Notes: generated by a model not told the origin, from the sequence alone. Counted from the stretch's first letter, positions 11,328-14,300 are shown. The stretch: DNA of 64,000 nt from Lama glama (GCA_028534125.1 CM052825.1:868001-932000), one strand, 5' to 3'. Numbers and translations: made by a program.

Positions 11328-14300
11328 CTAGGGGGACAGATGCCGAGGCCACGCTCACCCACGTCTTGGCCAGTGCCCCACGCCCTTCCCCCAAGCCTCC
11401 GCCCTCCCAGGGGGGTCCACCATGCCTGCCTCGAGAGCATCAACCAGACTGGGTGCCCCTCCCTGACCATGTGGTCACCAGGTGCTTCTTGGATCCCCAG
11501 AGCGACAGAGAACTCAGTCCCTTACAGTGAGCCTGCCTGTCCTTGCACTGCTGCTGCCACACCGTGGGTCCCGGCACCCGCTCCCACCCTGAGCCCGCCG
11601 GCCCCGACCCCACGCCGGCACTGCCATGTTACCCAGTTTCTGGATCATGTTGTGCAGCACTTCGTCCTCCTCCTGCTCCCTGGGACAGAGCAGGGCTGTG
11701 AGGGTCGCACCCCGAGCCCAGGGCCACCTGGCACCAGAGTCACCTGCCCTCTCACCTGCCCACAAGCCACACCCTGGCACCGCCCTCCCCCTCCCTGGGC
11801 AGGTCTCTGCCATCTCAGCAGTGACTGGGGACAAGAGGGCCTGGGAGGACCTGGGCCCAGGCCCCCTCAAGCTGATAGAGTGACATGCTTGAGTCTTGAC
11901 CTGGGCCACTGACCCCGGGAGGCCTGGACAGGTCCCTCGTCTAGACACAGGGACAGGAAAGCTCTGTGGGGACAGTTGCAAAGCTGGCGGCCCAGTGCAG
12001 CACCAGGAGACACACATGCTACGTGTGTCTAAGATGAAAATAAAGGTCAAATCCTGGACCTCGGTTGCACTGGCCGTGGTGCAAGTACCTAATAGCCATG
12101 CATGACCCGTGGCTGCCGTGTGGCACCACCATCACAGGACACCTCCGTCACTGCAGAGGGCCACCAGCCCGTGCTGACCCTGAGGGTCAGGGAACGTGGT
12201 GCACAGGGGGCCTCCTTGGTGGGGGACCTGGAAGGCAGGCTGCATGGCAGGGCCCGCCCTCCACCCTGGCTCCACCCGCAAAGTACACACAGTGGGCCTT
12301 CTCCCGCAAGGGGAAGGTTCTGATCTGAGCCAACCTGGGCCCCCTGCCCTGGGCTCCACCCTCACCTGGCACCCCTCACCTGGCGTCCCTCACCTGGGCC
12401 CCTCACCTGGCGTCCCTCACCTGGGCCCCTCACCTGGGCCCCTCACCTGGCACCCCCTCACCTGGCGTCCCTCACCTGGGCCCCTCACCTGGCGCCCCCT
12501 CACCTGGGCCCCTCACCTGGGCGTCCCTCACCTGGGCCCCTCACCTGGGCCCCTCACCTGGCACCCCCTCACCTGGCGTCCCTCACCTGAGCCCCTCACC
12601 TGAGCCGGTCCTCGTCCAGGAAGTCGACGATGTTGCTGCGGTCATTGACTGTGTTCACATACTGGTTCAGCAGATCCTGCTCCCGCTGCCGGTCCTGGGG
12701 GGACTTCAGACACTCTGCAGGGACAGCTGCCATCAGCTGGGGCTCCGCTGTCCCCACCCTCCTCAGGACACGGTGTCCCCACCCCTCAAGGGTCAGGCTC
12801 CTTCACTGGAGGAGAAGGGTAGTGCCTTGGGCATCTGGGGCCTCTGGGCACCACTGGCTGAATGAATGAATAAGTGAGTGAATGAACAACGTATCAGAGA
12901 CTGGGTGTGGCCAGCCCTTCCCCGGGTCATCTCAGCCATCCTCACAAAACCTGCCCAACGTGGAGATGTGGAAACAGGCTCAGGGCACGGCTGCCCGACT
13001 CCCACAGCAGGAGAGGGCGGGGGGGGCTGCCAGGGCACTCGACCATGGGAACCCACAGCCCCAACAGTCACACCCACACCTCTACCCTGCACACATTAAC
13101 TCACTTAATCCTCACAACAATGGAAGGAGGTGGGTGCTAGAATTGTCCCCACTTTGCAAGGATGAAACCCGGGCACGGAGAGGTTGAGTGACGTGGCCAA
13201 GGACACACAGCCAAGAAACGGAGGAGCTGAGATGCCACCCCAGCTCCAGAAAGGGAGAGCCATGACCACCCACCCCAGGCAGGCAGCCTTGAGAGGCCTT
13301 GGAAAGCAGGCACCCATGCCCACCCCCGGGGCTGAGCCCCGCCCCCACAGCCTCCACCCCCTGGGGCTGAGCCCCGCCCCCACAGCCTCTACCCCCTGGC
13401 CAGCCTGGGATCCATGGTGGGCGGGTCGGACCAACCGGGCTTGGCCATCAGCTGGCGGAGCTCCCCCTCGATGTCCAGCTGCTGCTCCTCCAGGCGCTGG
13501 TCCCTGGCCCTGCCGGGGTGACACAGGCGTGAGGTCCGGCCCATGCACTGGACTCCCCAGCCCCAGCCCAGCGTGCAGGGAAGAGGGGCTCCTGGGGGCC
13601 CGCAGGCTGGACCTCTCACTTGTACATCAGCTCCGACTCCAGCCTCAGCAGAAGCTGCTTCTCGTGGATGAGCCGGAACCAGTCCACCATGAGGGCATCC
13701 TCCGAGTCATCTAGGGGGAGGCCAGGTCAGGGCACTGAGCGTGGCGAGGGCCCAACCCAGGGGTGGCCTGCGGTCGGGTGGGCAGGTGGTGTGGGGGAGC
13801 CGGTGGTTGGGGGGCAGCCTGTGGGGGGGATGGCGTGGGTGGCAGGGGGGTGCAGCCTGTAGTCGGGGTGGTGTGGGCGGGGGAGCCATGGGTGGGGGAA
13901 ATGGGGCGGGGGGTGGCCCGTTGGGAGCAGCCCATGGGCGGGGGGCACGGCTCACCCCCCTCGGCCGCTCGCAGGCGCTTCTCCAGCTCCACGCCCCTGA
14001 GCTCCAGGGCGTCCAGCTGCCTCTCGATGTCCTGCACCTGCCTCTGGATCTCCTCCTGGGGCATGTAGTCGGGGTGCAGCTGGGGAGGAAGGAGTGGTGA
14101 GGGTTGACGGGAGGCACTGGCCCCAGGGGTCTGAGCCCCTCATCCACCTGTACCCCGGCCTACTCACCCTGACGGGGGAGATTACTGACGTTCCAGGTGA
14201 AGTGGGGGCACCAGCCGGGCCCAAGGGCCTCCCTGGAGAAGGGGCAGGACACGTCTCTTCAGGTACCAGGCCTACCGTGACCCAGACGTGGTCACACGCA

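Follow-up and report, generated by a model that had tools for sequence, protein, structure and literature searches.

What does a pre-mRNA do with a 5' splice site that is repeated 18 times in tandem? This question is raised by a locus of Lama glama, located in a window of 64,000 nucleotides (GCA_028534125.1 CM052825.1:868001-932000; the whole stretch of DNA that was analysed). Here, the third-from-last coding exon of a gene that fits MICALL2 runs directly into a minisatellite whose every unit carries the donor of that exon. The anatomy of the array, the reading frame with its stop codon, and the equal strength of the 18 donors can be read directly from the DNA. The explanation we favor, to which we assign a probability of roughly 65%, is that the array is a near-neutral intronic minisatellite seeded by the splice donor, wherein the first donor would be productive and the others would be silent or used with a low level of leakage that is removed by nonsense-mediated decay (NMD). 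An earlier note on this DNA had proposed that the array might tune MICALL2 output, or might act as a U1 sink or an RNA G-quadruplex. Judged against published precedents, these functional proposals appear less likely.

The identity of the gene is suggested by its domains and by its neighbor. The exon adjoining the array has a Pfam match to the bMERB domain at 12712-12602 (E 2e-9), corresponding to profile positions 90-125 of 134, and an upstream exon (14064-13954, minus strand) matches bMERB positions 1-28 (E 1.5e-6). A CH-domain exon is present on the same strand (22374-22234; Pfam CH, E 5e-7), and CH and C-terminal bMERB domains are therefore both found on one strand, as for MICALL2. Weak PDB matches also relate the array-adjoining exon to the bMERB domain of MICAL1 (best E 0.054; residues 104-139 of a 150-residue construct). 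A LIM domain was sought between the CH and bMERB regions, where an open frame at 20614-20357 reads CGVCG...HRGCF; as a single-exon fragment this frame has no Pfam match. Upstream on the minus strand are INTS1 exons (52257-55433; Pfam INTS1_INTS2-bd, E down to 1.6e-25). MICALL2 and INTS1 are neighbors in mammals, and this adjacency fits MICALL2 and not MICALL1. A gene with CH and bMERB domains beside INTS1 fits the proposed identity as MICALL2, whose product, an effector of Rab8/13, takes part in junction and recycling traffic. A metagenome scan with the 53-amino-acid ORF of the exon gave a single locus (L001, 2337-2393), which was rejected as a chance match of 19 residues that includes no MICAL-like exon.

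The exon in question (called exon 15 in the earlier note) is 115 nucleotides long, spans 12600-12714 on the minus strand, codes for part of bMERB, and ends in phase 2 (AG). Its authentic 5' splice site, CAG/GTGAGG (12594-12602, minus strand), is cut between 12600 and 12599, such that the exon ends at 12600, the GT occupies 12599-12598, and the donor is the first copy of the array. The exon is followed by a penultimate exon of 47 nucleotides (11633-11679, minus strand) that is composed of a G, 15 residues, and a G, and that ends in a weak donor, TGG/GTAACA. The coding part of the last exon (11233-11327, minus strand) consists of AC, 30 codons, and a TAG stop at 11235-11233. An AATAAA poly(A) signal is found at 11147-11152 on the minus strand, which places the distal end of the array about 1.2 kb away from the signal, in agreement with the distance reported earlier. 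Skipping of the penultimate exon would shift the frame and leave the last exon open past the AATAAA, generating a non-stop transcript.

Reading beyond the authentic donor gives AG/G TGA, with the stop at 12596-12598 on the minus strand (translated ...DEDRLR*). This in-frame TGA, described in the earlier note and recovered here, resides within the first repeat unit and stays in every transcript spliced from one of donors 2-18. Because read-through meets the TGA, use of a distal donor removes the last 46 amino acids, including the end of bMERB, and the translations of the penultimate and last exons agree with this number. The stop is at least 56 nucleotides ahead of the last exon junction, as had been calculated: for donor 2 the distance is 9 + 47 nucleotides, and it is greater for donors farther away. 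The TGA is thus located beyond the 50-55 nucleotides of the NMD rule, with donor 2 borderline at 56 nucleotides. The presence of this stop in the first unit also means that every alternative donor yields either a truncated form or an NMD form. The frame is intact in the downstream exons and completes the bMERB domain, and so the first donor must yield productive mRNA.

The minisatellite itself occupies 12359-12606 on the minus strand and is composed of 18 units of 13-15 nucleotides, as defined by script count, Tandem Repeats Finder (TRF), and a unit-by-unit reading. A script search for perfect matches to the 10-mer CAGGTGAGGG gave 18 on the minus strand between 12602 and 12359, corresponding to CCCTCACCTG on the plus strand with start positions that run from 12359 to 12593. 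The earlier count of 18 donors, including the real one, is therefore correct. When the minus strand is read from 12640 to 12320, the coding exon ends in ...TTCCTGGACGAGGACCGGCTCAG and is followed by GTGAGGGG and then by 17 more copies of CAGGTGAGGG. Only two further copies of this 10-mer are present in the remaining 63.7 kb of the window. Likewise, the window contains 23 copies of the 9-mer CAGGTGAGG, compared to 3.2 +/- 1.6 in dinucleotide shuffles, and 18 of these 23 fall inside the array. When counted from start to start, the donors are spaced 13, 14 or 15 nucleotides apart, which agrees with the lower bound of the range of 13-16 nucleotides given previously and revises its upper bound. A spacing of 13-15 nucleotides is tighter than the footprint of a U1 snRNP.

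Among tandem repeats in the 64-kb window, the donor array has by far the top score, and just one other array scores above 100. TRF describes the region 12359-12606 with a period of 13 (18.1 copies), a period of 55 (4.5 copies), and a period of 111 (2.2 copies, 95% match). A block of about five units that occurs twice had been reported, whereas both TRF and a unit-by-unit reading reveal a block of 8 monomers (111 nucleotides) present in 2.2 copies. If each distinct unit is given a letter, the array reads ABCDDEDF / DBCDDBDB / G plus unit 18. Each unit is an invariant core, CAGGTGAGGG, joined to a spacer of 3-5 nucleotides (GCT, ACGC, GGTGC, GCC, ACGCC, GGCGC, or GTGC). The first unit takes in the last seven nucleotides of the exon (GGCTCAG). 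Units 1 and 2 together form a 13-nucleotide duplication of GGCTCAGGTGAGG that spans the exon/intron border and has no mismatch, which indicates that the array includes these seven exonic nucleotides. At its other end, the array is followed by a decayed tail (12320-12358, minus strand; sequence read directly) in which CAGGGCAGGGGGCC, CAGGTTGGCT, and CAGATCAG carry destroyed or weakened donors. Two of these decayed units, CAGGGCAGGGGGCC and CAGGTTGGCT, are located at 12351-12328. The decayed distal units and the 95%-identical higher-order repeat of 111 nucleotides are typical of minisatellite turnover. A PRDM9-like 13-mer, CCNCCNTNNCCNC, was considered and rejected, as the array has no copy of it.

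Among the 18 units the 10-nucleotide core never varies, and every change sits in the spacer, which makes up about 30% of the unit. If some 5-8 changes had occurred uniformly and independently, the naive chance that all of them would hit the spacer is 4e-5 to 4e-3. Core invariance might therefore be read as a weak hint of constraint on CAGGTGAGGG. It is a weak hint only, because CpGs and G-runs in the spacer are mutational hot spots and because the units are copied from one another and are not independent. Such hot spots can plausibly account for much of the invariance.

Assemblies are prone to error in short tandem arrays, and so the array or its length might be an assembly artefact. We regard this as extremely improbable. 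In 14 DNA runs, drawn from a minimum of six studies and compared as Logan contigs assembled from short reads, 96% of the 31-mers sampled from 11100-13700 are present, a figure that reports word presence and not copy number. Of the distinct 31-mer words of this region, 8.7% overlap the array and 2.8% overlap positions 13459-13500; most of the words of the array must thus be present in independent read sets. In addition, the pattern of variant units is complex and unlike simple stutter. Runs of N elsewhere in the window are found at 1637-1816 (180 nucleotides) and 2017-2267 (251 nucleotides).

All 18 sites in the array are identical from position -3 to +7, and the donors are thus equal in intrinsic strength. 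The predicted duplex of each donor with the 5' end of U1 has an energy of -11.6 kcal/mol, compared to -14.0 kcal/mol for a perfect consensus, and the corresponding value for the TGG/GTAACA donor of the penultimate exon is -6.2 kcal/mol. The Shapiro-Senapathy consensus value of the array donor is estimated to be about 88. In the 19-kb span of the gene there are 28 sites that fit at least eight of the nine consensus positions, 18 of which belong to the array. Elsewhere in the same intron (11721-11760, minus strand), 40-80 nucleotides upstream of the acceptor of the penultimate exon, is another small group of motifs that resemble donors. It is formed by a tandem of two copies of GGGCAGGTGA with a 12-nucleotide period and by a third motif, CCAGGTGG; two motifs of the cluster fit the 5' splice site consensus at eight of nine positions.

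The array RNA has no unusual predicted structure, with an MFE z-score of +1.26 and with 92 of 100 shuffles folding at least as well. Sequestration in an RNA hairpin was rejected based on this value. The earlier suggestion of a G-quadruplex is not borne out by the canonical motif: there is no match to (G3+ N1-7)x3 G3+ with loops of up to 7 or up to 9 nucleotides, whereas 32 overlapping candidates appear when loops as long as 12 nucleotides are allowed. The 250 nucleotides downstream of the authentic donor contain 17-18 runs of G3-G5. Neither AATAAA nor ATTAAA is present anywhere in the 920-nucleotide intron, and intronic polyadenylation was rejected for this reason.

A class of minisatellite has been described in which the first monomer straddles the border between exon and intron, with the result that the intron contains repeats of the donor (PMC1557585). 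The MICALL2 array has these same characteristics, with a first monomer that spans the border and a donor that is repeated exactly in all 18 units. The arrangement is already known from F7, IFI6, CBS, LMNB2, PDGF, and ABCA7, and MICALL2 adds another gene to this collection. A literature search returned no paper naming both MICALL2 and a VNTR, and in a looser search that also covered tandem repeats, minisatellites, and alternative splicing, MICALL2 was named in none of the 12 top-ranked papers. Which MICALL2 donor is used, and how often, we infer from these precedent genes.

A close experimental parallel for the arrangement is the VNTR of F7 intron 7 (IVS7; Borensztajn et al. 2006, PMC1557585), which likewise has a border-spanning first monomer and identical pseudo-donors, most of which would give a premature stop if used. 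The F7 array carries 5-9 units of 37 bp with a weak donor, UGG/GUGGGU, whereas the MICALL2 array carries 18 units of 13-15 nucleotides with a strong donor, CAG/GUGAGG. Donor usage in F7 was measured experimentally, whereas for MICALL2 it is predicted. Solely the most upstream of the identical F7 donors is used, pseudo-sites with consensus values as high as 91 fail to compete, mutation of the first site allows the next site to take over, and no autonomous intronic element was found (PMC1557585). Similarly, the authentic site alone is used in LMNB2 and PDGF (PMC1557585).

In other members of the class, pseudo-sites are used as well. Intron 2 of IFI6 (6-16; Turri et al. 1995, as summarized in PMC1557585) has 26 copies of a 12-nucleotide unit, each with a donor and beginning at the exon border. 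According to the same summary, the first two of its 25 pseudo-sites are used besides the authentic donor. The IFI6 units are described there as keeping the frame, such that pseudo-sites 1 and 2 add amino acids, whereas the first MICALL2 unit has an in-frame TGA. The CBS gene has a 31-bp VNTR that resembles the MICALL2 array in its position at an exon/intron border (exon 13/intron 13) and differs in unit length; its first two pseudo-sites are also used besides the authentic donor, as given in the account of CBS in PMC1557585. The title of a study cited in that paper ties this VNTR to reduced CBS activity. In intron 18 of ABCA7 (De Roeck et al. 2018, PMC5954066), a GC-rich VNTR of 25-bp units starts at the GT of exon 18, and the second donor, whose use retains one unit, generates a transcript with a premature termination codon (PTC). 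This transcript represents 2 +/- 1% of the total and rises with cycloheximide, and its share is independent of VNTR length (PMC5954066). In contrast, VNTR length strongly raises the skipping of the downstream exon 19 (PMC5954066). The ABCA7 alleles that showed this effect are 0.3-10 kb long, compared to 246 nucleotides for the MICALL2 array. With regard to spacing, the 13-15 nucleotides of MICALL2 are tighter than the 37 of F7 and the 25 of ABCA7, and the nearest value is the 12 nucleotides of IFI6.

These observations are consistent with a model in which the splice donor itself seeded the GC-rich repeat through the 13-nucleotide duplication across the exon/intron border. Slippage or unequal exchange would then have enlarged the array, including a recent duplication of the 8-unit, 111-nucleotide block. 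Splicing of the pre-mRNA would select the donor nearest the exon, by a 5'-to-3' choice of the first functional site together with exon definition. The G-runs located downstream probably help the first donor, much like the G-triplet intronic enhancers known to act on a 5' splice site upstream of them. All 17 pseudo-donors might then be silent, or the nearest one or two (donors 2-3) might serve a small percentage of transcripts. Any such leaky transcript would contain the TGA at 12598-12596, and NMD should clear it. The array would thus be a by-product, close to neutral, rather than a device for regulation. Because its spacing is nearest to that of IFI6, where pseudo-sites are constitutively used, leakage could exceed a few percent.

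The main competing proposal is that the pseudo-donors compete substantially, and that the length of the array sets the share of unproductively spliced, PTC-containing transcripts degraded by NMD, thereby tuning MICALL2 output. The 18 donors are indeed identical and strong, the in-frame stop is genuine, as is its separation of 56 nucleotides from the last junction, and the accounts of IFI6 and CBS in PMC1557585 indicate that pseudo-sites near the first donor can be used, with a cited title pointing to lower CBS activity. However, the identical pseudo-sites of F7 are wholly unused (PMC1557585), the second donor of ABCA7 accounts for only about 2% of transcripts regardless of length (PMC5954066), and the stop retained with donor 2 is borderline for the 50-55 nucleotide rule. 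We consider tuning of this kind to be unlikely. We give a similarly low likelihood to a broader possibility, namely that this array might differ from those of F7 and ABCA7, with either a sizeable share of distal-donor use or a loss of the weak 47-nucleotide exon that depends on allele length, and with its core kept by selection. If this were true, the array would be a heritable dial on MICALL2 output. A related model leaves donor choice alone and holds that a longer array promotes skipping of the 47-nucleotide penultimate exon, by analogy with ABCA7 exon 19. The strong effect of VNTR length on skipping in that gene (PMC5954066), the weak U1 duplex predicted for the TGG/GTAACA donor, and a frame shift that leaves no stop ahead of the poly(A) signal all agree with it. 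However, the model is pure analogy, and the effect in ABCA7 was seen with alleles that far exceed 246 nucleotides, which makes exon skipping of this type very unlikely in our estimation.

The array might also serve as a platform at the level of RNA or DNA. As RNA, its G-runs might recruit hnRNP H/F or additional U1 snRNPs and thereby reinforce the first donor, suppress premature cleavage, or form G-quadruplexes. In favor of this view, about 18 runs of G3-G5 lie within 250 nucleotides of the donor, and enhancement of a donor by G-triplets located downstream is an established effect, with G-rich elements 3' of a site enhancing that site via hnRNP H/F (PMC1919487). Several results dampen our enthusiasm for such a role, which we view as very doubtful. 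Quadruplex motifs are absent when loops are limited to nine nucleotides and emerge only with loops of up to 12, the array fold is no more stable than shuffles, and the intron lacks any AATAAA or ATTAAA whose use would have to be suppressed. Moreover, F7 gave no autonomous intronic element (PMC1557585), and the precedent arrays are not known to play roles of this type. As DNA, the array presents 18 tandem E2-boxes (CACCTG), which might be candidate sites for ZEB/SNAI or class I bHLH proteins. CACCTG resembles the sites of these proteins. There are 18 CACCTG elements in the 246-bp array compared to 144 in the other 63.7 kb of the window. However, CAGGTG belongs to the donor sequence that seeded the repeat, and the enrichment is therefore automatic, which leaves an E-box function highly improbable.

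If the pseudo-donors are silent, as the preferred near-neutral reading predicts for most or all of them, the locus would be another natural case in which a mammalian spliceosome, offered many identical 5' splice sites, takes the first. Among such arrays with a strong donor it would be the densest, and hence a useful substrate for comparing 'oriented scanning' with proximity models. If the pseudo-donors are used, unproductive splicing in MICALL2 would have a source that varies in length, as in ABCA7 or CBS.

Two further features of the region were noted. On the plus strand, all frames are free of stop codons across the array, and a spurious ORF of 135 amino acids results at 12196-12603; when this ORF was used as a query for array variants, no homologues were found in the protein collection. 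The intron upstream of the array-adjoining exon carries a separate tandem repeat (13320-13399) with a 35-nucleotide unit present in 2.3 copies that match at 95%.
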